A stretch of DNA of 64,000 nt, taken from Mobula birostris. Lineage: Eukaryota. The notes beneath the pieces were generated by a model. The model worked only from the letters and a program-made list of their open reading frames with translations, did not search any database and was not told where the DNA came from. Positions 15,004 to 60,071 of this stretch are shown one piece after another. The position numbers and the translations under genes are program-made. The stretch is from positions 87,749,921-87,813,920 of the forward strand of contig NC_092383.1 in the NCBI RefSeq assembly GCF_030028105.1. The letters run 5' to 3'. Each line of letters begins with the position of its first letter. Positions within the stretch are counted from its first letter, which is position 1.

Positions 15004-15667
15004 ATCACAGAGGATCAGCCCACTGGGTCAACCCAACCATTAAGCACCTATTTACATTAATTGCCCTCAGGTTCCCATCAATACCCCTGGTTAACCCTCA
15101 GGAAGGAGTGAGGGTGAGGAGGGATTTGAACTTAAGCGTAAAAATTTTAGAACTGAGCCATTGGTCCCCTGGGAGAGTCTGAAATCGATTAAGGACTGGT
15201 TGTAATGTTTCTTGGGGGAAAATGTCAGCACTGAGATGAGGTGGAGGAATGCGGTCACAGGTTACAATGTTAAGGGTGAAGAAGGAACGCAATAGTGCAG
15301 GGTAGGCCACAGGCAGCAGAGCTGCAGATGTCCTCAAGACTGCAGGGGGTGGGACAATGGACACTGAACAGCACTGGTGAGAATAATCAGCTGTAGGGGT
15401 ATCAGAGGCATGAAGGCAGGTTTAGCTTCAGATAAGAATTTGGGGAAGTCTGGACAAGATAGTGCTGTACATTGTGAGGAGGGTAAATAAACACAGTGGG
15501 TCTGAGGTGCAGGAAGGGAATGTTTGGGGTGGCGGACGAAGAGCCGGTCATGCAAGGAAACTATTCCTGGACGACGTCGAGCTTCTGGAGGATTCTTGAA
15601 GCTGCACAAATCCAAGGGAATGAGAAATATTCCGGCACTATCCTGACTGGTGCATTGTCTGTGGTTA

Positions 15668-15695
15668 ATTGGTTGGCGAGTCAGGAAGTGAGTCA
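15668..15695 (+). promoter_or_regulatory. Candidate promoter: inverted CCAAT box plus composite ETS/AP-1 site (CAGGAAGTGAGTCA)
   Basis: ATTGG at 15668-15672, GGAA core at 15684-15687 and a perfect TGAGTCA at 15689-15695, about 140 nt upstream of the gene A ATG. ATTGGTTGGCGAGTCA is conserved upstream of gene B (41584-41599). Confidence 0.5.
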
Positions 15696-15829
15696 TCAAA
15701 TGTTTCTTACACCATGGCATATATGTGTCATGCCAGAAGAGGAACTAATCTACTCCTGTGCTAACTAAGTAAATAGTTGGGCAACTCAAGCGTGACACAG
15801 AGACCCAAATGGTGTAAAACAGCTGAAAA

Positions 15830-15926
15830 ATGGAGTTGGTGTTGCATGAGTTCCACTGTCAGAAACACCCCATAACTACGGGATCTATTGCTCTGATGGT
15901 TCTCATCTCTGTTAGCCTCTTATCAG
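15830..15926 (+). CDS. Gene A exon 1, leader/signal peptide MELVLHEFHCQKHPITTGSIALMVLISVSLLS(G)
   Basis: ATG in a strong Kozak context (AAAATGG), hydrophobic C-terminal half, phase-1 donor CAG|GTAAAT. Same 97-nt length as, and homologous to, 41732-41828. Confidence 0.85.
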
Positions 15927-16225
15927 GTAAATCATTATATTTACAATATGTGCTGTTTAGAATTATTTATAAGTGTTCAGCAGTACTCTTATCAATGACA
16001 CTGGCAAATTCAGGAAGTTCTGCTAATGTTGGAACATGCACAGGGTGATGGAGATGAAGAGGAACCATTGAGAATAATGGCAGTTGCTGTCATGAATTCC
16101 ACGGGACTCTGTTCAAGAGTTGCAATAGGTGCACAGCAAGATCCCAGAGATACCCTGGACTGTTTGCCATAAGGGTGGTGGGATACAGCAACCACTACAA
16201 ACCACAAGGGTCCCAACACCCTTAT

Positions 16226-17050
16226 AGGTGTATAAGTTGATGAAAGGCATTGAATGTGTGGATAGTCAGAGGCTTTTTTCCCCCAGGGTTGAATTGGCTA
16301 GCACAAGAGGGCACAGTTTTAAGGTGCAGAGGAGATGCCAGGGGTAAGTTTTTTTTATGCAGAGAGAGGCGAGTGTGTGGAATGGGCTGCCAGTGACAGT
16401 GGTGGAGGTGGATATACATAGAGTACATAGAATAGTACAGCACAGTACAGGCCCTTCAGCCCACAATGTTGTGCCGACCCTCAAACCCTGCCTCCCATAT
16501 AAGCCCCCACCTTAAATTCCTCCATATACCTGTCTAGTAGTCTCTTAAACTTCACTAGTGTATCTGCCTCCACCACTGACTCAGGCAGTGCATTCCACGC
16601 ACCAACCACTCTCTGAGTAAAAAACCTTCCTCTAATATCCCCCTTGAACTTCCCACCCCTTACCTTAAAGCCACGTCCTCTTGTATTGAGCAGTGGTGCC
16701 CTGGGGAAGAGGCGCTGGCTATCCACTTTATCTATTCCTCTTATTATCTTGTACACCTCTATCATGTCTCCTCTCATCCTCCTTCTCTCCAAAGAGTAAA
16801 GCCCTAGCTCCCTTAATCTCTGATCATAATGCATACTCTCTAAACCAGGCAGCATCCTGGTAAATCTCCTCCGTACCCTTTCCAATATGATAGGGTCTTT
16901 TAAAAGACTCTCGGATAGGTACGTTGAGCTTAGTAAAATAGAGGGCTATAGGTAACCCTCGGTAATTTCTAAAGTACGTACATGTTCAGCACAGCATTGT
17001 GGGCCGAAGGGCCTGTATTGTGCTGTAGGGTTTCCATGTTCTTTCTATGC
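16226..17050 (+). mobile_element. CR1 3' fragment (host of a nested CR1) in gene A intron 1
   Basis: The + strand CR1 reads continuously across the insert: GTGGAGGTGGATA | TGATAGGGTCTTTTAAA. Confidence 0.85.
16415..16887 (-). mobile_element. Young CR1 3' fragment nested in another CR1
   Basis: Uninterrupted 134-aa RT C-terminal ORF, nearly identical to 40081-40550; (TTCTATGT)-like tail. Confidence 0.92.
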
Positions 17051-17639
17051 TCTACCTAACCAACATTTGTGCAAACAGGAGGTCACCCAACGTAGATTGA
17101 CCAAATTTTTTTGGGGAGCGTGTCAGTGGCAAATCATCCACGGAAACTGTCGCTCCGTAGAATTCCCAGCCTGGATATTCACCTGCAGGAGAAGAAATGG
17201 CTGCAATCACAAATTGGCAAACTGTGAATGGCAGCTGGGGACAATGTTAAAATTTTTAAAAACTCAGCAAAAGTACTTTGTCTCTTAATTGTGATGGTCT
17301 GAGTAAATAAAGAAAATGCATTGGCAGAAATTTTAAATGTATTTTATGATTGTGAGCTCGGCATCAGTGGCATGGCCAGCATTCATTACTCATCCCTAAT
17401 CGCCCCTGAGAAAAAGGTGGTGACTCCCCTCATTGAAACACAGTGAGAATTATTTCCCCAGAATTCACTCTGTGTTAATCAAGAACCAACATACAGGCAG
17501 GTTGGAAATGTCACACCGAGTGATTTTGTTTTCACTGTTAACTTGAAGCTCTGAGCAGTAGAAATGACAAGTTTATATTGATGAAATTGCCTTGTGTTGA
17601 TGCAGTGTACTTAATATTTCATCATCAATGTGCCTGCAG

Positions 17640-17953
17640 GCTCAACTGCATTAACTGGACCTGAGAAGGTCAGAGGAGTAGTGGGACAATCAATCACCGT
17701 GGAATGCCAGTATGATCAGGAATACAAGGATTACGTGAAAAAATGGTGTACAGGTGATCCTTACGTTGGTTGTTCTGATGTGGTTTCAACTGAAGAGGAC
17801 GAATAACAATGACTGATAACAAGGTACAAGGCATTCTTTCAGTAACTGTGGACAATCTAATGAAGAGTGATGAAGGGTTGTACCAGTGCATGATAGAAAG
17901 GGCAATGTTGATTCCGAACAAAAGGTTTACCATTTCCCTGGAGATTTCTGAAG
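17640..17953 (+). pseudogene. Gene A V-type Ig exon (VA) with a 10-nt frameshift deletion
   Basis: Acceptor CCTGCAG|, donor GAAG|GTATGT. Reads [50 protein letters not shown], then shifts frame; resumes [50 protein letters not shown]. Lacks the 10 nt (CCAGCCAYGA) present in V1-V3. Confidence 0.92.
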
Positions 17954-18539
17954 GTATGTTGACTACTTCACTTTTGTTCCAAAGTTTGAAAATCACACCT
18001 TGGGAATCCCAACACCCCCCCCACACTCACATTGTCCATGACTCAGTGCCTCATCTTGGGGCAACTAAGGACAGCAGCCTCATTTACTGGGGATCCCAGC
18101 CTATGAAGACACTCCAAGAGCCCCAGACTTCTGGAAGGGTATGAATAGACTGTCAAACACTGACCTGACAAGAAGGTCCCAGATGCTAACTGTTCTGTTG
18201 TTGACTGGTCACTTCCCCAAAGACAGTTGCTCTGAGATCAGACATTGAACCAACTCAGACTGGAGCAGGAGGAGAGTAACAAGCTACACACCTGTCCCCT
18301 TGCCCACCAAGGCTCACTCTCACCTCTCACACATTTCTTCAACTCAGTCCAGCTCTGCCAATTCCAGCAATAAATTCCCAGATAAGAAGGGTGATCTGGT
18401 CCTTGGACTGAGCCACACAGAAAGTACAACATAAAGTGGATCATGTGGGAAATACTCAGCTGGTCAGGTAGCATTTATGAGGAGAAAATGATCTTAATGT
18501 TTTACTTCAATCTGAACTTCCAATATTTTGGGGAAATGC

Positions 18540-20513
18540 CAGAAGAAAAGAAGAGCTTACGAAAGGTTCAAAAAACTAGGTAATGATAGAGATCTAGAAG
18601 AATATAAGGCTAGCAGGAAGGACCATAAGAATGAAATTAGGAGAGCCCGAAAGGGCCATGAGAAGGCCTTGGCAGACAGGATTAAGGAAAACCCCCAAGG
18701 GATTCTACAAGTATGTGAAGAGCAAGAGGATAAGACGTGAGAGAATAGGACCAATCAAGTGTGACAGTGGAAAATGTGTATGGAACTGGAGGAGATCCGA
18801 GAGGTACTTAATGAATACTTCACTTCAGTATTCACTATAGATAAGGATCTTGGCGATTGTAAGGAGGATTTGCAGCGGACTGAAAAGCTTAAGCATGTAG
18901 ATATTAAGGAAGAGGATGTGCTGGAGCTTTTGGAAAGCATCAAGTTAGATAAGTCACAGGGACTGGATGGGATGTCAACCAGGCTACTGTGGGAAGTGAG
19001 GGAGGAGATTGCTAGCATCTGCCGATGATCTTTGCATCATCAATGGGGACAGGAGAGGTTCCAGAGCATTGGAGGGTTGCGGATGTTGTTCCCTTATTCA
19101 AGAAAGGGAGTAGGGATAGCCCAGCGAATTAAAGACCAGTGAGTCTTACTTCAGTGGTTGGTAAGTTGATGGAGAAGATCCTAAGAGGCAGGATTTATGA
19201 ACATTTGGAGAGTCATAATATGATTTGGAATAGTCAGCATGGCTTTGTCAAAGGCAGGTCTGCTTTACAAGCCTGATTGAATTTTTTGAGGATGTGACTA
19301 AGCTCATTGATGAAGGTAGAGCCATAGATATAGTGTATATGGATTTTAGCAAGGCATTTGATAAGGTACCCCATTGCAAGGCTTATTGAGAAGGTAAGGA
19401 GGCATGGGATCCAAGGGGACATTGCTTTGTGGATCCAGAACTGGCTTGCCCACAGAAGGCGAAGAGTGGTTGTAGACAGGTCATATTCTGCATGGAGGCC
19501 GGTGACCAGTGGTGTGCCTCAGGCATCTGTTCTGGGACCCCGACTCTTTGTGATTTTTATAAATGACCTGGATGAGGAAGTGGAGGAATGGGTTAGTAAA
19601 TTTGATGATAACACAAAGGTTGGGGGTGTTGTTGATAGTGTGGAAGGCTATCAGAGGTTACAGCGGGACATTGGGAGGATTCAAAACTGGGCTGAGAAGT
19701 GGCAGATGGAGTTCAACCCAGATAAGTGTGAGGTGGTTCATTTTGGTAGGTCAAATATGATGGCAGAATATAGTATTAATGGTAAGACTCTTGGCAGTGT
19801 GGAGAATCAGAGGGACCTTGGGGTCCGAGTCCATAGGACACTAAAAGCTGCTATGGAGGTTGACTCTGTGATTAAGAAGGTATACGGTGCATTGGCCTTC
19901 ATCAATTGTGAGATTGCGTTTCAGAGCCGAGAGGTAACTTGCAGCTATGTAGGATCCTGGTCAGACCCCACTTGGAGTACTGTGCTCAATTCTGGTCGCC
20001 TTAGTGTAAGAAGGACGTGGAAACCATAGAAAGGGTGCAGAGGAGACCTACAAGGATGTTGCCTGGATTGGGGAGCATGCGTTATGAAAATAGGTTGAGT
20101 GAACTTGGCCTTTTCTCCTTGGAGTGATGGAGGATAAGACGTGACCTGATAGAGGTGTACAAGATAATGAGAGGCATTGATCCTGTGGATAATCGGAGGC
20201 TTTTTCCCAGGGCTGAAATGGCTAGCACGAGAGGGCATAGTTTTAAGGTGCTTGGAAGTAGGTACAGAGGAGATGTCAGGGGCAAGTTTTTTTAAAAAAC
20301 ACAGAGAGTGCTGAGTGCAAGGAATGAACTGCCGGTGGCGGTGTGGAGGCGGAGACGATAGGGTCTTTTAAGAGACTCCTGGTTAGGCACATGGAGCTTA
20401 GAAAAATAGAGGGCTATGGGTAAGCCTAGGTAGTTCTAAGGTAAGGACATGTTCAGCACAGCTTTGTGGGCTGAAGGGCCTATATTGTGCTGAGGGTTTT
20501 CTATGTTTCTATG
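18540..20513 (+). mobile_element. CR1 5'-truncated ORF2 inserted into the gene A V cassette intron
   Basis: RT motifs ([28 protein letters not shown]). Cassette sequence resumes at 20514 (..ATGCAGAGAAGAGGAAGGGTG), as in V1 44130 onward. Confidence 0.93.
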
Positions 20514-20939
20514 AATTATGATGCAGAGAAGAGGAAGGGTGCAGTGGTTAGAAAGAAGACAAAGAGGTGAAATTACCAACAGGAAAAAAAATTAAATGAA
20601 TAGACGTGTAGATGGTAGAAAGGCTGGGATTGCTTACAAATGAAATAAAATTCAGGAATGCATCTTATCGAGATGAAAGTTCAGATATAGGAGTACAAAA
20701 ACATAGTTTGCTAAAAGCAGTATCACAGATAGTTATGGTGGTGAAGACGACATTTGAAAGATTGGCCTTCATCAGCCACTGAAGATTGGATTTGGGGCGA
20801 TATGATGCAATTGCACAAGATGATGGTGAGAAAGCATTGGAGTATTAAGCACTGCTTAAGTCACCCTATTAAGGGCAGGGCATCATTAAACCGTGCAAAG
20901 AGGACAAAGGTGATTTATGAGAGTATTCTTTTCCCAATG

Positions 20940-21505
20940 GACATCCAACTTACTTGTTCTTCTCCATTCCCATTCCAACATGTTGCTCCATGGCATCCTC
21001 TACTGCCATAGTGAGGTTACACTCAGGTTAGAGGAGCAACACCTTATTTTCCATCTGGATTGCCTCCAACCTGAGGGCATAAATATCAATTGCTCTAAGT
21101 TAGGATCTTTTCTTCTCCCACCCTCTTCGCTCTTTTTCTATTCCCCAATCTGGCTTCCCCCTTAGCTCTTCTCTTCTCATCACTGCCCTCTGGTCCTCCT
21201 CCTTCTCTTTCTTCCATGGTCCTCCCTCCTTTCCAATCAGATTCCTTATTTTCTAGCCCATTACATTTTCCACCGATCACCTCCCAGCTTCTCACTTCAT
21301 TCCCTCCTCTCCCATCCACCTATCTTCTCCCTTACCTGGCTTCACTTATCACCTGCCAGCTTATACTCCTTCCACTCTCCACACCTTATTCTGGCTCTCC
21401 CCCTTACCTTTCCAGTCCCAGTGGCCTGAAATGTGACTGTTTAGTCCCTTCTATAGATGCGACCTGACCTGCAGAATTCCTTCAACATTTTGGATGTTGC
21501 TACGT
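20940..21505 (+). mobile_element. Penelope-like element, GIY-YIG C-terminus and terminal repeat
   Basis: [33 protein letters not shown] motif, followed by a pyrimidine-rich terminal repeat. Confidence 0.8.
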
Positions 21506-21689
21506 TTAAGAGACAGTTGCCAGGACTCCAGAGTCAGAAGTTTGGGGATAAGTAGGCCAGACTCAGACCTTATTCTGGAGAATGAGGGGTGGTCTTACAG
21601 AGGTGTATGTGATCATGAGGGGAGTAGACAGGGCAAATGAATGTTATTTGTTTCCAGAGAAGGTGAAATAAAAACTACAGAGCCATGTT

Positions 21690-22395
21690 TTCAGAGTGTT
21701 CAACACCAACATACTCTCAGTATTAATCAACAACCCCCAAAACCTGGGCCTCTGTGCCTCCCTCTGCAACTAGATCCTTGACTTCTTCATCAGGCAACCA
21801 TAGACAGTGTGAATTAGAAATAACACCCCTTCCTCACTGACAATCAACACCAGCACAACTCAAGATTATGTGTTTTACCCACGGCGTTACTCCCTCTGCA
21901 CCCATGACTGTGTGACTAGGCACAGCTCAAACCCCGTCAAAAAATGTATCAATGCCACAACTATTGTTGCCAAAATATCAGATGAGGAGGCATATAAGAG
22001 TGTGAGCGATCAGCTGGGTGAGTGGTGACACAACAACCTAGCATTGAACATCAGTAAGACCAAGGAATTGATTGTGGACTTCAGGAAGAGTGAGTGGGGG
22101 AACTCACACCAGTCCTCAGAGGGATCAGAAGTGGAAAGGATGAGCAATTTCAAGTTCCTGAGTGTTAACATCTATCCTGATCCCTACATATTGATACAAT
22201 TACAAAGAAGGCATGACAGCAGGTATATTTCATTAGGAGCTTGAGGAGATTTAGTATGTCATCAAAGACTCCTGAGAATTTCTACAGACATACCATGGAG
22301 AGTGTTCCAATTGACTGCATTGCCATCTTGCAGAGAGCAGCCACTGCACAGGGTCCGAAAAAGCTGCAGAAGTAGTAAACTCAGCCAGCTCCATC
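21690..22395 (+). mobile_element. Rex1-type LINE RT fragment
   Basis: LNISKTKELIVDFRK motif. Confidence 0.75.
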
Positions 22396-24557: not shown

Positions 24558-24615
24558 AGGTGAGAAAGACTGCCACTGCAACCAGTTCTACTCCTTTGAC
24601 CGAGAATGGAAACAG
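24558..24615 (+). CDS. Gene A stalk exon (E)VRKTATATSSTPLTENGN(R)
   Basis: Acceptor TTTATTCACAG|, donor CAG|GTAAGA, phase 1 to 2, Thr/Ser-rich. The upstream intron (AGATATTTCATCCACTTTA) resembles that of the gene B stalk exon. Confidence 0.8.
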
Positions 24616-32040: not shown

Positions 32041-32576
32041 GAAAAATTGAAACTACAATCATAATAACAATAAATATCAAAAACACAAGTTGTAGGGTCC
32101 TTAAAAGTGAGTCCAAAGGTTGTGGATCAGTTCAGTGTTGGTGAGTGAAGTTATCCCCATTGGTTCAAGAGCCTTATGGTTGAGAGGTAATACCTGTTCT
32201 TGAACCTGGTAGTGTGGGACCTGAGGTTCCTGTAACACCTTCTGATGGGAACACCAAGATGAGACCATGGCCTGGATGTTGGGGATCCTTGAAGATGGGC
32301 CAACTTTTTCCCACAGAGGTTGGTGAATCCAGGGAATGAGCTGCAAGACATGATTGAGACAGGTACATGTATCATTTAGGATGCACTTGGATAGGTACTG
32401 GATGGGGAAGGCTTAGAGGAATATGGTCCAAACACAGGAAATTAGGACTAGGGACTAGCTGGATGGGCCCAGTGGCCAGCATGGACTAGATGGGCTGATG
32501 GGACTGTGTCCATGTTGTATTGCTCAATGGCAATTTGTCTTCGTGTATAAATACTTATATCTCCTCCATCCATCAG

Positions 32577-32684
32577 GAACGATGTGCCAAAATTTCATCA
32601 TTTTTGGAATGTGACCCGCTGGGTACTCTTCATAGCCTTGGTTCTTTGCACAGTTTCGATACATTACATGACAGCCTTTCAAAG
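32577..32684 (+). CDS. Gene A transmembrane exon (R)NDVPKFHHFWNVTRWVLFIALVLCTVSIHYMTAFQ(R)
   Basis: Acceptor CCATCCATCAG|, donor AAG|GTATAT, phase 2 to 2, 108 nt, homologous to 56249-56356. Hydrophobic helix containing an Arg. Confidence 0.88.
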
Positions 32685-33399
32685 GTATATCGTTTCCAAT
32701 TTCTTCACGTCCAGCAGTTCAGGAGTTCTGTGAATATCCTCGGGAAATTACAACAAAATGTCACAGAAGAGATTATAATCTGCAGATTAAATATTATTCA
32801 TGGAGTGAAACGGCAGTGGTAACACACAAATGGTTAAATGGTTGCGCAATTTGTATTTTGCGTGTGTGGGGTTTGATGTCATTGTTCCAATTTGCATGAT
32901 AGGTTTTTTGTGCATGGGGGGCAGGGGGTTGATGTTCTTGATGTCGTTTGCACAATATTTTCTTTCTTTGCCCGTAGAGCAGTATGTTACAGTTTGTTGC
33001 CTTCTGCATGATTTTTTTTGGCATCTTTGAAGGGGTTTTGACGTTCTTGTTGCTGTTTAGTTAATTTGGGTTTATTGTGTGTGTCGATGTTTTTCTTTGA
33101 ACTACATCCATGGTCTTCGTTTTGCAGCTGTCTGGAGAAGACAAATCTCAGGGTTGTATCCTGCATACATAACTTTGAAAATAACTATATTTTGAATACT
33201 GAAATGGTTGAAATTCATGTTCAAAGGCACCGTATTTGATGGATAATATAGGGTTTGTTAACTGCTTTTAATTCTGATGTAATGTCACTGCACTTTATGT
33301 TTACATTTGCAGTGTCACAGAGCAGGCACAGCAGTTAAGAATATAGAAACCATGTCACATACACCAAAGAGTCTCCTTACCTAGTCTGCAGTACACTCA

Positions 33400-33940
33400 T
33401 TAGACCACAAAACATAGAAGAATTAGAGCATTTAGCCCATCTACTCCATCGTTCAATCATGCCTGATTTACTATCCCTCTCAAGCCCATTCTCTCACCTT
33501 CTTCCTGTAACATATGACACCCATTCTCACCAGGAAGCTATCAACCTTCACTTTAAATATACCCAATAAGCTGGCTTCCGCAGCCATCTGTGGCAATGAG
33601 TTCCACAGATTCACCACCCTCCATATGACTAAAGAAATTTCTCCTCATCTCTTTTCCAAAGTGACTTCCTTCTATTCAGAAGCCGATCCTTCTGGTCCTG
33701 GTCTCCCCCACTATAGGAAGCTTCGTCTCCATGTCCACTCTATCAAGGTCTTTCAATATTCAATAATTTTCAATGAGATTCCCCTGCCCCCCCATTCTTC
33801 TAAAACCCAGCGAGTAAAGGCACTGAACCATCACATGCTCCTCGTACATTGACCCTTTCATTCCTGGGATCATTTTTGTGAACATCGTCCAGACCCTCTC
33901 CGATTCAAGCACATCCTTTCTTCGAAAAGGGGCCGAAAAC
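33400..33940 (-). mobile_element. CR1 3' fragment
   Basis: Reverse complement of CR1 RT C-terminus and 3' UTR. Confidence 0.8.
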
Positions 33941-41731: not shown

Positions 41732-41828
41732 ATGGAGCTGGTGCTGGGTGAATTCACACTCGAGAGACACCCCAGGACAATGGGAGCTATCGCTCTGTTG
41801 GTTCTCATCTCCACTGGTTTTGTATCAG
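41732..41828 (+). CDS. Gene B exon 1, leader [32 protein letters not shown](G)
   Basis: Two in-frame ATGs (41732, 41780); the second starts a classical signal peptide. Phase-1 donor CAG|GTAAAG. Confidence 0.88.
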
Positions 41829-44800: not shown

Positions 44801-47800
44801 CTCCCCCATTGATGCTGCTCCCACCGGAATCACTTTTATTTCCTGGACATCTACGCTCACCCCTTGATTCCAAGATACCATTCTCCCCAATTTCTGCCAT
44901 TTTAACAGGATTCTACCAACAAACACATCATAATCTTATGGTCTTATAATCATCCCTCACTCTCAGCTTCTCCAGTGATGGCTCCCTTTATGATTTCCTT
45001 GTCTGTAAATCCCTTCCCCATTAATCCATCTCCTGGTACATATCTTTGCAAGTGACAAAAATGCTACACCTGTTCATTCACCTCCTCCCGTAACTCCATT
45101 CAGAGCCCCAGACAGTCTTCCAGGTGTAACTTGGAGTGCTGCTTTGTCAAGCACATCCACCAAAAGCTGAATTTCCTAGAAGGCAACCATCTTAGTTCCT
45201 ATCCCCATTTTGACATGTCAGTCCTTGGCTTTCCCTTTTGCCATGATGAGGCCACTCCCAGGATGGAGGAGCAACACCTCATATTCCATCCAGGTAGCCT
45301 CCAACCAAATGGTATGATCATCAATTTCTGTTTGATAATTTTTTTGCCACCTTTCTCCCTCTATTCTCTACTCTGACCTCTTATCTCTTCTCTTCACTTG
45401 CCTATCATCTGCTGCCCCTCTTTCTTCCTTTTATCCCATGGTTTCTTCTACTCTCCTATCAGATTACTTCTTCTCCAGTATTTTAGCTTTCCCACACACT
45501 TGGCTTCATCTATCACCTTCTGGCTTATCTACTTCTCCTCCCCACATCTTTTTATTCTAGTGTCTTCCCCCTTACATGACAGTTCTGAAGTAGGGTTTCA
45601 GGCTGAAATGTTGACTGTTCATTCATTCCCATAGATGCTGCCTGACCTGCTGAGTTCCTCCAGTGTTTTGTATGTTAACCCATCCTCATTTCCCAGTTTC
45701 AATCATTGTTTGTCTATTGACGACATCGATGAGGACCTTGACACCATTATGATGGTGTCGAGACTAGCGCGTGATTTGGATTTAAGTGAGGGAGAGTTGC
45801 TCAGTGTCAGCCTCACTCTCTCTTCCCAATTCCCGTCTGGATCCAGTGGCAAGACAGAGTCGAGATGGCTGGAGATGGGACTAGGCGCAGTGGATGACCA
45901 GGACGTCTTCTGTGTCTTGTCCTGCTCTACACGTTCCATAATGCTTGCAGAGACCGCCTTCTTGACTATTGGACCTTCCATTGGTCTCGTCCACTCAATC
46001 CACCAGAGTCTGTCTTCACATGCTGGGATAGACAACTCCCTATCTCACCGAGGGTTTGATACTTGTTGGCTACCCTCACCTGGTTTAGCCGGCTTGTCGA
46101 AGCCATTGCCCGGGGTGTTGCCGCTGTCGCATGCAAACAGCTATGGAGAGCCACAGGTGAGAGCTGAGTACCAGGTGGGGACCAAAGGTGGACTAACCGT
46201 CCTGAAACGGACACGACATGTTCCCCCACCAGAGGTGCTACCCCTCCCTGACACCCCATACACCCCAGTTTCATCCATAAAGCTTCACTGGAACCCCAGT
46301 AAATTCATTTAAACCTGGGCATCAGTGGGAAGGCCAGAATTTATTGCCATCTCTGGTTGCTCCGGAAGATCATGGCTCCCTCGCTGAACCACTGCAGTTA
46401 TCATTTCAGCAGAATTCACAACCCAAACAAGAAACACCAAATACAAAGCTTAGACATATTAGGGTGAGCGGTTCCGCATTCACTGAACGTTGACAAACAA
46501 TCTCAAAGAAATGAGGATTAACACCAAGGATAAAATATTAAAGTGGAACATGATCTCTGCACAATCATGAAGCTCTCAGAACAGTAGGCTCAAGGGTGGT
46601 GTGAGGAGTAAGTTTCTTTACTCAGAGTTATGGATGCCTGGAATGTGCTGCCTGATATGGTGGTAGAGGAAAATACATCAGAAGCTTTTCAGAGACTTTT
46701 AGATAGGCAGGACAATGCAGAGATATGGACATGTTGTGGGTAGATGGATGAGTGTTTGGGTATTTTAGATTTGGTTTTTAGCTGGCTTGGCACAACACAA
46801 TGGGCCAAATGGCCTTTTCCTCTGCGGTGCTGTTCTATGTTCTATGTTCTAGTAGACATGATGAGTTTATATTGCTAAGTGCACTTTGTGCTGATGATGT
46901 GTGGGTAATCTTTTACTATTCATATACCCACAGGCTCAGGTGCACTAACTGGACCTGAAAAGGTCAGAGGAGCAGTGGGACAATCAGTCACTGTGGAATG
47001 TCGGTATGATCTGAGATACAGGGACTATGTGAAGAAATGGTGTAGAGGTGATCCTTACGTTGGTTGTTCCGCTGTGGTTTCCACTGACCAGCCACGAAGT
47101 GAACGAATAACAATGACCGATTACAAAACACGAGGGATACTTTCAGTAACCATGGACAATCTAAGGAAGAGTGATGAAGGGCTGTACCAGTGTATGATAG
47201 AAAGGACAATGTTGATACCAAATGAAAGGTTTACCATTTCACTCGAGGTGTCTGAAGGTATGTCAATAATTTCTCTTTCATTCCCAAGTTTAAAAATCGT
47301 AGCTTAGGAATTCCCTCCTTGCACTGACCACAATTCAGTGCTTCATCCCTGGGCATCAAAGGACTGAGTCCGCATTTACTGAGGATCTCAGCCTATGGGG
47401 AAACACCAAGAGCCCCAACCTCCTGGAAGGGTGTGAATGGACTGTGAAATCCTGAACCAACGGGACAGTCTTAATGGCCAGTTGTTCTCCTGCGGATGGG
47501 TCACTTCCACAAAGACAGTGGCTCTGAGATCAGACATTAAGCCAGCTCTCACTGGAGCAGGAGGAGAGGAACAAGCTTCACACCTGTCCTCTTGCCTACC
47601 AAGCTCACCCTCACCTCTCGCACATTGCTTCAACTCAGTCCAGCTGCAGCAATAAATTCCCAGATAGGAAGGGTGATCTGGTCTTTGGACTGAGTCACAC
47701 AGAAAGTTCAAAATAAAGTGGATCATGTGGGAAATACTCAGCAGGTCAGGCAGCATCTGTGGAGAGAAAACAACCTTAATGTTTCAGGTCAATCTGAACA

Positions 47801-50800
47801 GCCAATATTTTGAGGAAATGTAGAAGTTACAATTCAGAGAAGCAGACAGATGGGTGGTAAATAGAAGACTAGGCGCTGAAATTACTAATAGAAAAGAAAA
47901 TAAAATCAATAGATGTGCAGACATCTCTTGAAGGTATGTGTACAATTTGTCATCACATTCCCAAGTTTGAAAATCCCATCCTGTGAATTTTCTCCCTTTC
48001 ACTAACCACAACTCATGCCTCATCCCTGGGTATGTACAGCAGGTTAACTAAAATCAATGGCAAGGAGAACAGAGCTAATGATTCAGCTAGATACTCTTTC
48101 AATGGTAATGGAAACATTTGAGGTCAAAAATTTGTTCAGTTGCAGGTAGAGGGAAGACTCCACAAATGGACAGTCCCAAGCCCAGATGCAAAAGGAGAAG
48201 AGTTCAGCATGAGGCTAGCAACCCACAGTAGCATGGTGATTAGCTCAACACTACTTAAGCACGGGGCATTGGAGTTTGGAGTTCAATTCCAGTGTTCTCA
48301 GTAAGAAAGTTTGGACTTTCTTCCTGTGACTTTCCTCCTGATGCTCCGGTTTCCTCCCACAATCCAAAGATGTACCAGTTAGTAAGCTAATTGTAAATTG
48401 TCCTGAGATTAGCCTAGGGTTAAATAGGTGAGTTTCTGGAAGGGCCTACTCTGCACTATATCACTAAATAAATTAAAGTAAGAAAAGAAAAATCTCGTGA
48501 AAACCCAGAGCTACAGAAACACCAACAGAAGCTCCAAAGATCTCATCCATGGGAGAGGAAAGATACACCAAGGAGGGGCGATAGGCCCCAAGAAAATGGC
48601 AGGGGAAGAGTAGCGTGGATGGACAGAAGACAAAGAAAGGTTGTTGATAGGGTAGGGAAAGCAGAGAGTAAAGCTTGTGTGGTAAAGAATTGGTTAAAGA
48701 TTGGGACAGGTACCAAGATCTGAGTCAGGAGGTGGAGTAGAACTGAGAATAAATATCTGAAGTTACCAGCAGGTAAGAAAATAAGCATTAGTGATCACTA
48801 GGAACTGAGTTAGAAAGGCTGGAATTGATGGCAGTCCTAACAATATCTCAGTGAGAATTTTTTTAATACACTGGAAGACTGACTGGTTGCTTTATTTTTA
48901 TCAATTATGAAAGAAAAATCTTCTATATTGCTGTACAAATAATCACCTGCAGATGTCCTTTTCCTGATATCGTGACAAATTACAATCCGCCTCACACCAG
49001 CAGCTGAGGCACAATGCTAGTCACAGGCCTCTAACCCAATAAACAACTATAAACCCTCACGCTTCCCTTCGCACCAGCAAGCCATTTCTGTGTCACAGTC
49101 ATCTTTGCCAAGTTCCTCTTTAATACCACAGAATATGCCATACCCCAATTGATCCTGGTCCAAATTGCTTTGCCATCTATGGAGATGGCAAAGTATATTG
49201 CTTGAGAATTTTCCTGAATACACTTAAATTCTGTCACATCAAAGCCCTAACTAAGGCAGTCCCACTGTTTATAAGGAATCATGATATCCCCTACTATGAA
49301 AGAAAACTAATTTTTTTTTTTTTTTAAATTAAACTTTCCGCAACCACTTTGAAGGTTCCTCTTATACCCATTGATGATTAGCCTTCCTGGAGTAGAATGA
49401 TCAACCCCTTCTTATTTCTCAGGTTCACCCAGAGATCCTCACTGGATGATCCCCCAGTAAACTCATTACAACAGTGACCAGGCCAGAACCTATCTGCCAT
49501 CTCATGTTGCCGCTGAGGAGGTGGTGGCTCCCTCACTGAACCACAGCAGGGATCATTTCTCCAGGATTCACAGCCTGCTCACAACAAGAAACAACAGACA
49601 CGCAAGTTGGGAACGCCTGACCACCCATTATAGCTTTTACTGTAACTTGAGGAACAACTCGGTGAAATGAGGATTAACACCCGGGATAAAATATTCAAGA
49701 GGAACATGATCTCTGCAAAATCATGAGATTCTCTAAGCAGTTAATAAGATGAGTGTATGTTGCTAAATGCACCTTGTGCTGATGACGTGTGGGTAACTTC
49801 CATTATTCATGTGCCAACAGGCTCAGGTGCATTAACTGGACCTGAGAAGGTTAGAGGAGCAGTGGGACAGTCAGTCACTGTGGAATGCCGGTATGATCCG
49901 AAGTACAAGGACTACGTGAAGAAATGGTGTAGAGGTGATCCTCACGTGGGTTGTTCCACTGTGGTTTCGACTGACCAGCCATGAAGAGGACGAGTATCAA
50001 TGACTGACAAAAAAATACGAGGGATTCTTTCGGTAACCGTGGACAATCTAATGAAGAGTGATGAAGGGGTGTATCAGTGTATAATGGAGAGGGTAATATA
50101 CGTACCGAGAAAAAGGTTTATCATTTCACTGGAAGTTTCTGAAGGTACGTTTACAATTTCTCGTCAAGCTTCCATATTAGAAAATCGCAGCTTAGGAATT
50201 CCCTCCCTCAGCTCTGACTATGACTCAGTACCATTAAAGAGATGGGAACTCATTTGCAGGGCTGCAGCCGATAAGGACAAAGAAGAGCTCCACCTTCCTG
50301 GGGGGAGTATGAATGAGCTGATAAACCTGACAGGAAGATCCCAGTGGCCAGCTTTTCAGCTGTTGATAAGACGTTTTCCCCAAAAGACTGCAGTTCTGAG
50401 ATCAAACCTTGTGCTGAGTCTCACTGAAGCAGGAGGAGAGGAACCAGCCCCACCCCTGTTCCCCTGCCCACCAAGCTCACGTTCACCACTCACACACAGT
50501 GGTGATTCCATTGCTTCACCTTGATCCAGTTCTGCCAATTCTACCAATCATTTCCCCCAAGCAAAAATGTCTGTCTGGTCTTTGCACTGAGCCAACACAG
50601 AAGGTACACATCATGGGAAATTCTCAATAGGTCAGTCAGCATCTCTAGATTTAATGGTAGAGGTAGATACCCTATTAGCACCTTCAAATGTCCTTTTCTT
50701 ATTGCCCTTTATTCCTCTTCTATGAACTGATCAACCCCTCCTTTCTCTCAGCCTCTTTCTTTGAGCTACTTCACCCAACCCCCATTTCACCTCCACACTC

Positions 50801-53800: not shown

Positions 53801-56800
53801 AGAGCTTTTCCTGAATTTGGGACACTCTCAGCAACATTCTATGACCAGGGACAAAGAATGGCCAAAGAATCTCCCTGAGAGTGCCCCAAATTCAGGAACC
53901 TCTGGGAGCGTCCCAAAAATCAGGAATATATTGTCACCCTTTTTTCTCTAATAACTGAAGACAACGCAAGCATGGACTCTCACAAGAAATAAACTCTCCA
54001 AATTGAAAGGAATGATTGCCAGGTCTCTTGCACATTGTCCTATCAGCCACAACCCCTTGATTGCCCCACCCTTCCTAGGTCAGACACAGCTGCAAGTCAC
54101 ACAACCGTGCTTCCACTGGCGATGTCTAACCAGACTGAGGCTCATGATAGAAGTTGGGGAATGTTTGAGAGCTCATAGGGCTTAGCCTGTATGAAGATGG
54201 CCTTGTCAGGAGGGAACCACAATGACCATCTGCAGTAAGATTTGAACCAAGGACCTTCAGGCACCGAGCAAGTGACCTAAGTGGGGCACTGCCCACACTT
54301 CATGGAGATGGGATAGAAACTGCTTTCAAACTTTCAATATTCAGATATTTTATCTACTTTACCCTCCAGAAAATGAGACAAGCACCATGGAAACTACTAA
54401 TGCAACCACATGGACCAGCTCATCTCAGAACGGAATTCCCACCAGGTTAGAAGGATCCACTGAGACTTTTGTTTCATTGATTCAGATCAGATCAGCCATT
54501 TCATGGGCCAACTCAGACTTCCACAGCTTTACCTCAATGTTGCAGTACTCTCAGGACAGCTCAAGATGAATATAGACAGCAATTTTTCCAGTGATCGCAG
54601 TGACTTGAAAGGAAAGAGTAGACGGTAGCTCAGGTTGGCTGCTTGTTTGTAGAGCTGTTCGCTGAGCCTGGCGGTTGGGTCACAAACGTTTCAACAGCAG
54701 TCGAGGTGACATCATCAGTGTGCAATTGAGTGCTGTTTCTGCCGAATGCTCGCGTTTGTATTGGTCTGACTCAGTGTTCTGATAGGTAGGCTGTCACACT
54801 GGCTACTAGTTTACATTAGGTCCAAGCGAAACAGATAGCTGAGTGATCACCGCTGGCTTGCTGGCCCATGTCCCTGGTTAGCAGTCACTGATCAGTGGTT
54901 CCTTGGGTGTTCCCTTGCCCCCGATCCCACAGACACACAGGTTCGTAATTTGCATCTAGTCCAATATGCTTGTTAATAGAGTCTTCTGTTGAGAACCAAA
55001 CTTTTAAGAATTCTCTTGTTTTCTTGTTTTGTGCTTCTGCGAGCACTCGGCAGAAACACCCAAATTGCGTATTGATGTTGTCACCTTGACTGGACACGAA
55101 ACCTTTGCGACCTAACCTCCGGGCTTGGTGAACAACCCAACCAAAGATCACAGTGATTTCATGATTAGCATTTTCTTTGCCTTAGTTGCACCTCATTGTA
55201 CACAGCAGAAATTCCCTCTTTTCAACACATTGAGAAGAAAATGCCTGAAGAACAGTCTCTGCAACCTGATCTTCCTCTCCTGGGGCTATCCAGGAATAAT
55301 TCTGGCAGAACACCAACATGGTGGACTTTACTCCAGCAGGATTGTCTGCACACAAAAGGTTCAAGGAAGGGGAAAACAACCCAGTAAATGTACATCAGTA
55401 TTCAACATGAAATCACTCTGATCGCTGGTAAAGCTCAAAGATTCCAAGTACACTTATTATCAAAGAATGTATAGATTATATAGCCTTGGCAGCCACAAAG
55501 CAAGAAACCCAAAAGAATCCAATTTTAAAAAGTAAAGACCAACCTTCAATGCATAGAAAAAGAGAAAAAAAAACAAATCGTGCAAACAAAAGCAGCGAGG
55601 AACAACAGCGGCATTTTGTACCAAGTTGAGTCCTTAGATCCAAATCCCCAGAGTAGGCTCAAAGACTAGGTATCAGCTCATCATGTTACCAGGGCGAATC
55701 GCCGCAAGGTTTGCAAATGCGAAACAGAGCAGCTGGAGCGACCTCACAGCCTCAGCGTCACAGTTGCTGACTATATTTATCTCCGCTATGCACTGTGATG
55801 GGGAAACAAGGTCTAGTGTGCATTAAGTATATAGAAATATATACATAGATATGATAACATTAATTTCACTCAGTTTCACTGGCAGTGCAACAGTTCCAAG
55901 GCGTGGGCATAGGTTGGAGAATCAGCACTCAACCAGTAGACTGCTCGATACTCCATGCATCACGTTGAATGATTTCATGTGCAATGTGAGGACAAGGCGT
56001 TTCCCAACTGTTACAGAATTCTCTGCGCGTTGTTAATTATGTTTCCTTTCTCCATCAGTGTCTGAGTTGAAAATTCACCATGATTTGGCTGTGATCCAGT
56101 TAATATTCTTCAGAGACCTGGCTTTTTGAACCATTTCAATAAAATGTATCTATCATTTGCTGATAACACATATTCGATAAAATGCATTTCTCAGTGGCAC
56201 TTACTGATTACTCTGTGTGTAACTAATGATATTTTCTTGGTTCATCAGGAACTATGTGTCAATAATTCATCATGTTTGGACTCTGACCCGTTGGATACTC
56301 CTCGGAGCTCTGCTTCTTTGCACTGTTTCAATACTTTGCATGACAGCTTTTCAAAGGTATATTGTTTCCAACCCCATCACTTCCACGTCGTATGATTCAC
56401 AATTAAAAGTGGAAGCTTCAAATTAGTCCTTGCTAATTAATTCAGACTGTCACATAAGCGTCTGTAACTGCAAACTAACGATTAGAGTGAAATGAAGGTG
56501 GAGATCCATTAATGGTTAAATGGCTTAAAGTGGCTGAAAGTAACAGTTAAAGGATACACATTAAAACAATATAATAGTTAAGCTAACATACTCCATATGT
56601 TATGCTTAGCTTTTCAGGGCCACAGAGGTTACTAGGCATTTGGAGATGTAAAATGCTCCTCACATGCACCAGGGATCCTGCTCACACAGCTCCACTCATA
56701 CCCAATTTAGCTTCACCACTGGCCAAGTATCTCACGTAGCTCAATAGACTAAGGACAGACGGTAGCATAATGCTTAATTCGACATCTTACAGCACCAGTG

Positions 56801-57514
56801 ATCACCGATCGCGGTTTAATTCCCACTGCTGTGAGGATATTTAAGTTCTCCCTGTTACCACATTGGTGTCCCTCCCCCTTTCCAAAGATGGACATGTTTG
56901 GGTTACTGAGGTGTGGGCATACTGTGTCGGCGTCAGAAGAGCAGTGACACTTGTGGGCTGCCCCCAGCACCATCCTCAGACTGTGTTGGTCGATGACACA
57001 AATGGCGTATTTCACTGTACGTTTTTACGTTTCGATGTACTTGTGTGAAATAAAGCTAATCTTTAACTCGTAAATGGAGCCTCACTCACAGAAGTAAGCC
57101 ATCCGCAATCCTTCATCGCTCCACCCAACCTCCAGCTCAGACAACTTCACACTACAACCACATATTTTCAGTTTCCCCAGGCAGATACAGAATGGCCCAA
57201 CCCCACTCAACTCAAACCACACAGTACCAACACCCACCACTGTAGAGTCCTTATTGCATTGTTCCAGCACCCACATAAAGAAATTATCACTAGTGTTTGC
57301 TGAAGAGAAATATCATCAACTATTCTGATCCTTCTCATCCCTCAATCCCTAACACTGGATTTTCTGTTTTTCTAGACAGGCTGGTGCGACGTGCCCTGAA
57401 AAACAGAACCCACAACACAGATGGATCAGTCCTAATGCAGGGTCTCGACCCAAAATGGCGACAGCATATTTTCACACCACAGATACAGCTCAACCTGTTG
57501 TATTCCTCCAATAG
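41732..57514 (+). CDS. Gene B: CD300/pIgR-like (MDIR-like) multi-V Ig receptor with TM Arg; predicted 355 aa when V3 is skipped
   Basis: Join 41732-41828, 43220-43543, 46934-47257, 54370-54445, 56249-56356, 57376-57514 = 1068 nt, open to TAG, all junctions GT-AG and phase-compatible. Confidence 0.85.
42430..42800 (+). mobile_element. Penelope-like terminal repeat upstream of the V1 cassette
   Basis: Pyrimidine-rich repeat homologous to 21100-21500 and 45330-45675. Confidence 0.8.
42717..42752 (+). ncRNA. Minimal type I hammerhead ribozyme motif (Penelope-derived)
   Basis: AGTC-CTGACGA-AGG(GTCTTGA)CCT-GAAAC-GTT-GACT: core CUGANGA and GAAA present, stem I AGTC/GACT, stem II AGG/CCT, self-complementary AACGTT stem III, GUU cleavage triplet. 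Confidence 0.65.
43220..43543 (+). CDS. Gene B V1 Ig exon, intact
   Basis: [107 protein letters not shown]. Has the B- and F-strand Cys, WC...C extra Cys pair and DxGxYxC motif typical of CD300/pIgR/TREM V domains. 324 nt, phase 1 to 1. Confidence 0.93.
44410..45675 (+). mobile_element. Penelope-like element (RT and GIY-YIG remnants plus terminal repeat) between V1 and V2
   Basis: [11 protein letters not shown] motif; DMSVLG...[23 protein letters not shown] endonuclease C-terminus. Confidence 0.85.
45702..46263 (-). mobile_element. RTE-related non-autonomous element with a 10-bp TSD
   Basis: Flanked by CCCAGTTTCA at 45692-45701 and 46264-46273; absent at the homologous position before V1 (~42810). 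Confidence 0.75.
46585..46850 (+). mobile_element. CR1 3' fragment inserted ~80 nt upstream of V2
   Basis: CR1 3' end with a (TTCTATG)n tail; absent upstream of V1 and V3. Confidence 0.8.
46934..47257 (+). CDS. Gene B V2 Ig exon, intact
   Basis: [107 protein letters not shown]. Boundaries CCCACAG| and |GTATGT. 28 of 107 residues differ from V1 by hand count. Confidence 0.93.
47925..48030 (+). pseudogene. Remnant of a deleted additional V cassette (exon 3' end, donor and start of intron)
   Basis: TTGAAG|GTATGTGTACAATTTG...TTCCCAAGTTTGAAAATCCC...CACTAACCACAACTCATGCCTCATCCCTGGG parallels the sequence after the V1, V2 and VA donors. Confidence 0.7.
49821..50144 (+). pseudogene. Gene B V3 Ig exon with in-frame nonsense codon (CGA to TGA at 49982-49984)
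   Basis: Full 324-nt phase 1/1 exon with intact acceptor (CCAACAG|) and donor (|GTACGT). The only lesion is TGA where V1 and V2 have CGA (Arg54). Confidence 0.92.
50846..53597 (+). mobile_element. CR1 ORF2 (5'-truncated in APE), between V3 and the stalk exon
   Basis: [32 protein letters not shown] and SADDTK motifs; same subfamily as 18540-20513. Confidence 0.95.
54370..54445 (+). CDS. Gene B mucin-like stalk exon (E)[24 protein letters not shown](R)
   Basis: Acceptor TTTACCCTCCAG|, donor CAG|GTTAGA, phase 1 to 2. Ser/Thr-rich with two N-glycosylation sequons (NET, NAT). Confidence 0.82.
54620..55145 (-). mobile_element. Penelope-like fragment of a second family with diverged inverted terminal repeats
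   Basis: Minus-strand [28 protein letters not shown] (GIY-YIG C-terminus); the reverse complement of 54650-54720 aligns with 55075-55140. Confidence 0.7.
56249..56356 (+). CDS. Gene B transmembrane exon (R)[35 protein letters not shown](R)
   Basis: Acceptor TTCATCAG|, donor AAG|GTATAT, phase 2 to 2. About 26-residue hydrophobic span with a single Arg; paralog of 32577-32684. Confidence 0.9.
57376..57514 (+). CDS. Gene B terminal cytoplasmic exon (R)[45 protein letters not shown]
   Basis: Same acceptor as gene A 34270, phase 2. The first ~35 nt align with the gene A tail exon; the rest resembles Penelope terminal-repeat sequence. Confidence 0.65.
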
Positions 57515-58046
57515 ATTTCTTATTGACCAGATTCCAGAATTTTGTAAATCCACAGATAGGTCAGTGCAGCATTTGCAGACTGATTAAGATCCAGAAAACC
57601 ACCAGAACAACTGACTTGAACACAAGGGATTCTTCAGGTGCTGGAAATGCAGAGCAGCACACACAAAATGCTGGATGAAGGCAGTATCTACAGAGAGAAA
57701 TAAAGTGTTGATATTTCAACATGAGATCGATGAAGTCGCTCAGCCAGAAATTTGACTATTCCCCTCCATTGATGCTGCCTGACCTGATGATTTCTTCCAG
57801 TATTTTGTGTGCGTTTTGATCAATCTCGCAAGCTGCTCTCAATACGATGCATTATTTTCCATTTTTACTGTATGAGTTTGTAAAACCCAGTGCAACCAAA
57901 GCAAATGATGTTCATCAAAATAATCCAGAGTGAATACAGTGACTGGATTTTGTAATGTTTGAACAATCCTTTGTAACAAGACAACAACAAATTTCATTTC
58001 CATAGCACCTAGAATGTCATGGTAAAGACTGAAGTAACATTGTCTG

Positions 58047-59296
58047 TGTCATAAGGGGGTGAGTTGGCAGATCCAAATGCAAGACATAGATACTGAAGAA
58101 CTAGGAACAGGACTTGACTAAAGACCTGGGACAAGAACACAGACTTGGACTAGGATATTGGCTAGGCAAGCAGGACCAGGACAAGGAACTGGGAACTAGG
58201 AGCCTGGGCTTGGACTCCGAGCCAGAGACTGGACAAGGACCCAGAACCTGAGTCTTGACTCGGGCTCGGACCCCGGAACTAGGTGAAGACATGACGTGGT
58301 CCTGGGAGACAGAACTAGGCGAGGCTACAGGACAGAACGAGAGACTCTTGGGCAAGAAGAGGGAACTCCGGCACAGGACGAGAGCACAAAGCTTTGACTT
58401 GGTACTCAGGAATAGCAGAGCCTTGGATTTGCGATGACAGGAACCTAGGAACCTTGGGACGACAGGAACACACAACACAGAGCCTTAGTCTTGGGGAGGA
58501 CAGAAACACTCTCGAGCTTGGTCTAGAGCACAGGAACACAGAGCCTTGGACTTGAGAGACAGGAACACAGGGACACGGAACACAGAGCCAGGACTCTTCC
58601 TTGAGAACAGGACTGAGGGCTGGGACTCTACACAGAATGCTGAACACGACAAGACAGTTCCCAACACTAGGTACGGCAAATAGCCGAACCTACCTAGCGA
58701 GGGCATGGACACAGATACAGTTCCAACTTAACTATAGACAGTTCCTTATCTTGACACAGCAAGGCTCCAGTCTCACTCCAGTGNNNNNNNNNNNNNNNNN
58801 NNNNNNNNNNNNNNNNNNNNNNNNNNNNNNNNNNNNNNNNNNNNNNNNNNNNNNNNNNNNNNNNNNNNNNNNNNNNNNNNNNNNNNNNNNNNNNNNNNNN
58901 NNNNNNNNNNNNNNNNNNNNNNNNNNNNNNNNNNNNNNNNNNNNNNNNNNNNNNNNNNNNNNNNNNNNNNNNNNNNNNNNNNNNNNNNNNNNNNNNNNNN
59001 NNNNNNNNNNNNNNNNNNNNNNNNNNNNNNNNNNNNNNNNNNNNNNNNNNNNNNNNNNNNNGGGTAACAACAAAGCCAGCCTGACTTACTCCACAGAGGT
59101 GAGGACGGGATACTGACAAGACAAGCCAGCAACCACACTCAGTCCCAGGGCCACTTATATTCCCAGCCCCAAGACGAGCATCAGGTGCCTATGATTAAGC
59201 CCAACTGAAACAAGGGACATCCAGAAGACCCGGAGTCTGGAGTCCAAGGACCGGACCGGGGACCGGAACACAGACCTCACAGACTGGACCATGACA
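58047..59296 (-). mobile_element. Solo LTR (Gypsy-like) with internal tandem repeats
   Basis: Termini TGTCAT...ATGACA, exact 5-bp TSD GTCTG (58042-58046 and 59297-59301), TATA-like AATATAAG on the minus strand, internal GGAACACAGAGCC-type repeats. Confidence 0.85.
58784..59061. other. Assembly gap (278 N) inside the solo LTR
   Basis: Run of N. Confidence 1.
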
Positions 59297-60071
59297 GTCT
59301 GACAATTTTTGTCATGGAGTCACATGTGACCAAAAACAATCTGGTGGGATTTAACAAGCATTTAAAGTGACCCAGAGAGCTGTAGGGAAGGAATTCCAAG
59401 AACTCAGGATCTGGGCCATGGAAGGTACAAATTAGAGATGAAAAGTGGTTCAGAACTGGAAGTTTCCACGTATTTCAGAGCTTCAAGAGATGCCAAGTGT
59501 CCCATATTGTAAAGGATAATCTCTATCTGAACGGAATTGTGTTAGTACAGGGTCATTTTTACTGTGAAACCAGTGTGTTAGGCCTCTATATCACCAGGAC
59601 AGCTCCAGCTCCATAGATTGGGTGATAAGTGATTTTACAACTGTTGAGCCAGATGACCAGGAGGATCACTGGTGAGGCTGCAACTGAAGAACCAAAATAA
59701 GGACAATATATCCCCGATGACTCTCCAGACCCCAGAGCCTGTTCAGTGTCAGCTACACTTCCCAAAACTGACCGGCCAATCTTCTATGAGATGCTGGAAT
59801 TAAATAATATTGATGTGAGCCAGCCCAGAGCACAAACAATGTCATTTCAGGCTATCAGGAAGAAGCCTGGGTTGGGCTTATCTAATGCTGGAGCTGCCTG
59901 TCATCCCAATAAGGTCAATTAAAGAGGTCCCATGGGTTGCTAATTTCCAGGAACTAAATGCCCTGTCCCAGACTCAATTCTACTTGGTACAATGGTTAGA
60001 CAGGGCATCGTGTATACAGAGCTGATCATTTTCCAGAAAAACACTCAGAAAGTGGCTTGGAGCTGGACAGG

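Follow-up and report, generated by a model that had tools for sequence, protein, structure and literature searches.

Does a tandem pair of immunoglobulin-type receptor units in the genome of the manta Mobula birostris encode working activating receptors, and to which receptor family do they belong? The units lie in a 64,000-nt stretch of contig NC_092383.1 (RefSeq assembly GCF_030028105.1, positions 87,749,921 to 87,813,920, forward strand), which is called the window here and to which all coordinates below refer. An earlier note, made from the sequence of the window, had described them as a hidden pair of CD300/pIgR-like genes with activating-type architecture. The analysis presented here indicates that the region is probably a tandem duplicate of one elasmobranch CD300-like gene of the modular domain immune-type receptor (MDIR) type, named as polymeric immunoglobulin receptor (pIgR)-like in RefSeq, with unit 1 a pseudogene and unit 2 disabled.

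Two collinear units with one gene plan

Self-comparison of the window revealed two collinear paralogous units, 15303-21418 plus 32543-35682 corresponding to 40658-45478 plus 56215-59955. Both contain leader, V, short stalk, Arg-containing transmembrane (TM) and short-tail exons, with AG/GT at every exon border and phases that fit throughout, and in-silico joining gave junctions in phase in both units. A scan for leader-like exons found a single leader per unit, and a hydrophobicity scan found a single conserved TM segment per unit. Unit 2 has three copies (V2, V3, and V4) of a block that comprises the V exon and about 650 nt of its 3' flank. Because there is one leader exon per unit, V2-V4 are parts of one gene, and the possibility that they are three separate genes was ruled out. 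Splicing of a V exon straight to the TM exon was also ruled out, as the phases clash (1 versus 2).

The earlier note had proposed two paralogous units whose leader, V, stalk, TM and tail exons splice in phase, and self-comparison and the canonical borders bear this out. Its spans (about 15030-35750 and 36650-60070) were right in that there are two units, but the part from 36650 to 40650 is an insertion of a long interspersed nuclear element (LINE) outside the paralogy of unit 2. The V part of unit 2 consists of three exons, starting at 43220, 46934, and 49821, and not of one; the third has a TGA. Its 355-residue protein model was reproduced exactly when the exons of unit 2 were joined without V4.

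The V exons and their lesions

The V exons were located by tblastn with the V-like open reading frames (ORFs) of the window, followed by alignment and exact border finding. Four were found, and all four have a CAG/GC acceptor, a GAAG/GTA donor (a slash marks the exon border) and phase 1/1; these and all other exons described below are on the + strand. V1 (17640-17953), the sole V exon of unit 1, measures 314 nt against the normal 324. A 10-nt deletion at 17791/17792 causes a frameshift with the first stop at 17804, and the joined frame of unit 1 ends at residue 88. Because the frameshift lies in the sole V exon, unit 1 is a pseudogene in this assembly.

In unit 2, V2 (43220-43543) and V3 (46934-47257) are intact exons of 324 nt in phase 1/1, with Pfam V-set matches at 1.4e-9 and 1.2e-11, respectively. 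V4 (49821-50144) has the same length and phases but carries an in-frame TGA at 49982-49984. The change is CGA to TGA, since V2 and V3 read CGA at the matching site. With V4 included, the joined frame of unit 2 ends at residue 303; as judged from the exon sequences, the 355-residue receptor with two V domains would be obtained only from transcripts that skip V4. Hence the pair of genes that had been proposed is a pair as far as copy number goes, whereas one copy is a pseudogene and the open frame of the other needs V4 to be skipped.

The ratio of nonsynonymous to synonymous substitutions (dN/dS) is 0.25-0.47 among the four V exons and 0.35-0.40 for V4 against the others, and the V exons are 83-86% identical, compared with 68-80% for their introns. 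These comparisons indicate that all four V exons, V1 and V4 included, have been constrained for most of their history, which implies that the lesions are recent.

Leader, stalk, transmembrane and tail exons

The leader exon of unit 2 (41732-41828) starts with the ATG at 41732, has its hydrophobic core from 41780 and ends in phase 1 with the donor TCAG/gtaaag. It matches residues 1-33 of the RefSeq protein XP_072133904.1 (P0002) at 100%, and its long N-terminal MEL..GEFT region is kept in ray and skate relatives. The unit 1 leader (15830-15926) is open and has the donor TCAG/gtaaat.

The stalk exon of unit 2 (54370-54445; 76 nt, phase 1 to 2, acceptor ccctccag/AA, donor CCAG/gttaga) is Ser/Thr-rich with two N-glycosylation sequons. 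By tblastn the region around 54366-54494 matches the stalks of the relatives P0003, P0004, and P0006 (E 6e-5 to 2e-3). The unit 1 stalk (24558-24615; 58 nt, open, phase 1 to 2, acceptor ttattcacag/, donor ACAG/gtaaga) has a donor that aligns with the internal donor of unit 2 (54445/54446). The stalk donors of both units are thus homologous, and the short stalk is common to both. The relatives have their stalk donor about 45 nt downstream, after "...IR" (...ATCAG/GT), where the window reads AG/AT. At this place, 54480-54497 on the + strand, the window has the series ATTCAG ATCAG ATCAG CC, a 5-nt tandem repeat in which GT is replaced by AT. A long stalk exon like that of the relatives was ruled out here, as the donor position reads AG/AT and read-through stops at 54567.

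The TM exon of unit 2 (56249-56356, 108 nt) has the borders TCAG/G and CAAAG/GTATAT with phase 2 on entry and exit, and encodes a W-x3-R-W motif with the Arg near the outer end of the helix. The unit 1 TM exon (32577-32684) is open and retains the motif as W-x3-R-W-x2-F. In an alignment of 12 TM sequences, from both units and ten relatives among rays, skates and sharks, W10, R14, W15, L21, and T32 are invariant. A short open stretch at 56180-56224 on the + strand, 25-70 nt upstream of the Arg-TM exon of unit 2, looks like the beginning of the TM exon, uncharged and of inhibitory type, of P0006 (KALSQWHLILTVALS; E 0.42), and unit 1 reads CIAQWQ at the matching place. An inhibitory TM exon may once have stood here beside the activating one and left this stretch as a relic.

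The tail is the least secure exon and is a prediction only. Its acceptor, TTTTCTAG, is identical in both units (34270 and 57376). The candidate coding part of unit 2 (57376-57514) has 45 codons past the junction codon and ends with the TAG at 57512-57514, and that of unit 1 (34270-34381) has 36 codons, none of them for Tyr, and ends with the TGA at 34379-34381. The unit 2 tail weakly matches the tail of P0004, a model from M. hypostoma (E 0.64). No immunoreceptor tyrosine-based inhibitory motif (ITIM) or switch motif (ITSM) was found in the predicted tails, of 36 and 45 residues, of either unit; the single Tyr of the unit 2 tail (ATAYFHT) fits no signalling motif. The Arg in the TM and the predicted short tail without ITIM or ITSM support the activating-type architecture that had been suggested for the units.

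An intact gene of this plan would start with a leader and at least one interchangeable CD300-type V exon (324 nt, phase 1/1). The stalk that follows would be short and glycosylated, the TM helix would have the invariant Arg in W-x3-R-W, and the tail would be short and free of signalling motifs. Its protein would be expected on leukocytes, with the V domains binding a ligand. By analogy with mammalian receptors that have Arg or Lys in the TM, it would signal via an Asp-bearing adaptor with an immunoreceptor tyrosine-based activation motif (ITAM), such as FcR-gamma, DAP12 or CD3-zeta, that pairs with the TM Arg.

Class of the V domain and comparison with known receptors

To which class the V domains belong was assessed by sequence and by fold. 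Pfam assigned them to the V-set at 1e-9 to 1e-11. A sequence search against the Protein Data Bank (PDB) placed human pIgR at the top when scores were summed over domains (1e-25), with the teleost pIgR 5f1s at 8.5e-23. The best single domain was mouse CD300f (CD300lf; 3.6e-15), followed by CD300a/c, NKp44, TLT-1, and TREM1/2. For V3, an alignment with 24 relatives was used to compute an AlphaFold (AF2) model, which shows eight strands and a predicted local distance difference test score of 93.8. Its closest fold is CD300lf (TM-score 0.91, root-mean-square deviation 1.8 Å, about 35% identity), then domain D1 of pIgR (0.86), with CD300a/c/f, TREM-1, and NKp44 as further matches. C22 and C86, which form the canonical B-F disulfide, are invariant in the V alignment, and each of the four V exons contains KKWC(R/T)GD..(I/V)GC and DEG(L/V)YQC. 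The extra C-C' cysteines align with those of pIgR D1 and D5, and a second disulfide is predicted from this. Sequence and modelled fold thus support a V domain of the CD300/pIgR/TREM type, as the earlier note had stated from its WC...C extra disulfide and DxGxYxC.

Like the V domains of the window, mammalian CD300 domains have the cysteines of the extra C-C' disulfide (WC...GC) and DxGxYxC, and like the family found here, mammalian CD300 receptors are paired activating and inhibitory forms, the activating members having a charged TM and a short tail. They differ in having a single V domain, whereas unit 2 has three V exons. Moreover, the activating members CD300b/c/d/e have Lys or Glu in the TM, in contrast to the Arg in W-x3-R-W of the window. 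pIgR, including the two-domain teleost pIgR, shares with unit 2 tandem V domains of the same subtype, and the strong pIgR matches are the source of the RefSeq name "pIgR-like". However, pIgR has an uncharged TM and a long tail with sorting and transcytosis signals, whereas the units have Arg in the TM and predicted tails of 36-45 residues, which argues that they are not pIgR. Unlike pIgR, which is a single conserved gene, the window genes belong to a large paired-receptor cluster.

A publication on related receptors describes the MDIRs of skate as a multigene activating and inhibitory family of CD300/TREM/pIgR-like modular immunoglobulin domains, in which a positively charged residue in the TM marks the activating members and ITIMs the inhibitory ones (PMC3031540). 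The traits shared with the window genes are a multigene family in cartilaginous fish, a variable number of V domains, here one in unit 1, three in unit 2 and 1-5 in relatives, and the presence of both Arg-TM and ITIM forms. The 2006 paper on skate MDIRs (reportedly Cannon, Immunogenetics 58:362) is said to cover MDIR1-5 of Raja eglanteria (ABC86796, ABC86797, ABC86799 and others) and to call their domains I- or C2-set, whereas those of the window are V-set by Pfam and by fold. The protein searches for relatives returned no entry named MDIR. The window genes are ordinary representatives of a family that has been on record since 2006, the CD300/MDIR-like activating and inhibitory receptors of elasmobranchs.

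RefSeq annotation and relatives in cartilaginous fish

An exhaustive profile-free search with V3 returned multi-V proteins, the second match being P0002. This is RefSeq XP_072133904.1, "polymeric immunoglobulin receptor-like [Mobula birostris]", of 302 residues. It consists of the leader, V2, V3, and V4 up to the TGA, is 100% identical to the window and lacks stalk, TM and tail. Hence XP_072133904.1 is truncated and misnamed, and the gene is a CD300/MDIR-type receptor with an Arg-containing TM and not pIgR. No protein model of unit 1 was among the matches. The description of the pair as hidden therefore fails for unit 2, which is already annotated. The expectation that the genes might be unannotated or mis-annotated holds insofar as the unit 2 model stops at the V4 TGA without the downstream exons, but not in the sense of a missing gene. 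What is new here is the stalk, TM and tail of unit 2, the finding that unit 1 is a pseudogene, and a corrected name; the unit 2 ectodomain was already in RefSeq.

Relatives named "pIgR-like" or "CMRF35-like molecule" are widespread among rays, skates and sharks. They occur in Mobula, Hemitrygon, Hypanus, Narcine, Leucoraja, Amblyraja, and Rhinoraja and further in Pristis, Heterodontus, Hemiscyllium, Scyliorhinus, Mustelus, and Carcharodon. They have 1-5 V domains and then a Ser/Thr-rich stalk, which is followed either by an Arg-containing TM and a tail of about 0-35 residues (P0003, P0007, P0152) or by an uncharged TM and ITIM-like tyrosines (P0006, P0010). The window holds the Arg-TM type only. 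There are dozens of paralogs, including ITIM-bearing partners, and several copies are on the same manta chromosome. The locus is thus within a large, fast-changing receptor cluster of more than 1 Mb on the manta chromosome, in line with the chondrichthyan cluster that the earlier note had envisaged.

Two further models were found to be composite. A stretch at 61352-61564 on the + strand has 91.5% protein identity to residues 196-266 of M. hypostoma XP_062922428 (P0004); similar repeat copies lie elsewhere in the window, one of them at 22032-22172. XP_062922428 joins an activating and an inhibitory gene via this piece and is therefore a fusion artefact. P0152 of M. birostris, with a span of 67 kb, likewise fuses two adjacent genes.

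Expression evidence

Among the sequencing runs listed, none contains the exons of this gene and no run recorded as RNA holds the locus, and four runs mapped on 44300-50299 yielded no transcript of the unit 2 gene. The unit 2 exons are absent from three same-species runs (X1-X3), the share of V3 words being 0.03. The contigs of these runs on V3, of 305 nt in X1 and 430 nt in X2 and X3, are about 91% identical to it at a depth of 54-101. The match ends at the last base of V3, and the 430-nt contigs begin matching 3 nt before the first base (46931). The depth is far above that of single-copy DNA for runs of about 120-160 Mb, so these contigs are most likely mRNA. All 14 residue changes implied relative to V3 point to the V domain of the neighbouring paralog P0152, which has a single V domain, a long stalk and an Arg-containing TM. 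P0152 thus appears to be well expressed in the X1-X3 samples. The fourth run, X4, consists of genomic DNA from a relative with a divergence of about 4-5%. A contig of it spans both borders of V3, but V4 is not covered.

Alternative readings of the two lesions

In this individual unit 2 is probably disabled or nearly so; the allele is most likely null or was disabled recently, in a family that evolves by birth and death. Several points weigh against this picture of the locus. The remaining exons and splice sites of unit 2 are intact, as would fit a working gene with V4 skipped, and both the TGA and the deletion are known from this assembly alone, that is from one individual. As the runs examined yielded no RNA of this locus, the inclusion or skipping of V4, the choice of the stalk donor and the tail are in-silico predictions. 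The similarity between the units ends about 14 nt into the tail exon, and the tail segment 57379-57519 has a 99% inverted copy past the assembly gap. As for the proposed signalling, a 2014 survey found no FcR-gamma in sharks (PMC4016189), and apart from that survey the literature searched offered nothing of use on FcR-gamma or DAP12 in cartilaginous fish.

The alternative that survives best has unit 2 encode an activating receptor that works in full, with V4 constitutively skipped to give a protein of two V domains, a short stalk, an Arg-containing TM and a 45-residue tail. The join that skips V4 is in frame, the leader, V2, V3, stalk, TM and all splice sites are intact, the TM retains all five invariant residues, and relatives vary in their number of V domains. 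Moreover, the acceptor tract of V4 is more purine-rich than those of V2 and V3. On the other hand, V4 has been under the same purifying selection as the other V exons, which argues for an exon in use until recently; its splice sites are canonical, the RefSeq model includes it, and the exons of unit 2 are absent from X1-X3. A working two-V receptor is therefore a possible but rather doubtful reading.

The V4 stop could also be used, either to produce a secreted protein of 302 residues, with two V domains and half of a third, or because V4 is a regulated poison or secretion-switch exon. XP_072133904.1 is exactly that protein, and soluble CD300-like receptors are known in teleosts, such as carp SITR (PMC3031540). 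However, the stop lies in the middle of the V domain and would leave a half domain that cannot fold. It is also three exon junctions upstream of the last exon, and as nonsense-mediated decay of stops upstream of exon junctions is an established rule, decay of the transcript is expected. Furthermore, among nonsense changes that arise by accident, CGA to TGA at a CpG is the most frequent, and the runs examined gave RNA of neither a secreted nor a switch form. Use of the stop is accordingly considered improbable.

In a further variant, inclusion of V4 would lead to decay or to a truncated secreted form and skipping to the two-V activating receptor on the membrane; the symmetric phase 1/1 of V4 means that it can be skipped or included in frame. 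In a related reading, the short-stalk donor shared by both units would mark a manta-specific sublineage with a short stalk. These ideas are speculative and a little weaker again; were the V4 switch true, it would be a splice-level on/off control of an activating receptor.

That both lesions are assembly errors and both units intact genes is very improbable. The locus is repeat-rich and near both an assembly gap and an odd 99% inverted duplicate, and all other exons of both units are open. Yet consensus errors do not typically take the form of a lone, clean C to T change or of 10 nt lost from non-repetitive sequence, RefSeq kept the V4 stop, and neither lesion is near the gap. Finally, the tandem pIgR-type V domains, the top summed PDB score of pIgR and the place of its D1 among the best fold matches notwithstanding, the idea that unit 2 is the cartilaginous-fish pIgR, as its RefSeq name has it, can practically be dismissed, since CD300lf is the best single-domain match by sequence and fold, the conserved TM Arg and a predicted tail without sorting motifs are unlike pIgR, and unit 2 is one of many paralogs that include ITIM-bearing partners.

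Repeats, assembly gap and the 3' end

The space between the units holds a LINE with a GDSL-esterase ORF1, an apurinic/apyrimidinic endonuclease and a reverse transcriptase (36731-40544, + strand), outside the paralogy. Sequence recognizable as LINE makes up about 46% of the first unit and about 23% of the second, both lower bounds, and not the 70-80% transposon sequence that had been estimated. The LINE 3' parts at 16416-16886 (+) and 40078-40544 (-) are 95.8% identical in opposite orientation. They are much younger than the duplication of the units (about 75% identity), and the GDSL-esterase-ORF1 LINE family has inserted into both units recently and independently. At 45500-46299, 47700-47899, and 48300-48499, every one of the four runs reaches an extreme contig depth (up to about 9e5 in X4); these stretches are very abundant short repeats within the V2-V3 and V3-V4 introns. 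An ORF of 225 residues at 45635-46312 had no Pfam match. A scan for bacterial-type promoters and terminators was set aside as not meaningful at a vertebrate locus.

The only run of N in the window is the assembly gap at 58784-59061, in the 3' untranslated region (UTR) or in intergenic DNA. It lies 1.27 kb past the predicted stop of unit 2 and is crossed by no predicted coding exon or frame; ORFs listed across it are open only because N is translated as X. On both sides the sequence follows unit 1 in order and orientation, with 34158-34283 matching 57264-57389 before the gap and 34559-34918 matching 59297-59614 after it. Around the gap, unit 2 is about 1.6 kb longer than unit 1. An AATAAA follows the predicted stop of unit 2 at 57699, and a homologous ATTAAA ends both units (35645 and 59918). 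The 3' block of unit 2 (59297-59955, + strand), collinear with 34559-35682 of unit 1 and with the ATTAAA at 59918 near its end, is possibly where a long 3' UTR ends.

Past the gap, 60072-60212 on the - strand is an inverted copy, 141 nt long and with sharp borders, of the segment 57379-57519, which nearly coincides with the coding part of the unit 2 tail exon. Either the segment was duplicated in inverted orientation very recently or the copy is an artefact of the assembly.

Implications

The value of these findings is mainly for annotation and comparative immunology. Besides the truncated and misnamed model of unit 2, neighbouring RefSeq models are fusions of adjacent genes. At the level of the family, the W-x3-R-W TM module does not vary between sharks and rays, which points to an Asp-bearing signalling adaptor conserved in cartilaginous fish, although the older survey found no FcR-gamma there; this argument is not specific to the present locus. 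The locus itself shows gene birth and death in the manta receptor cluster.

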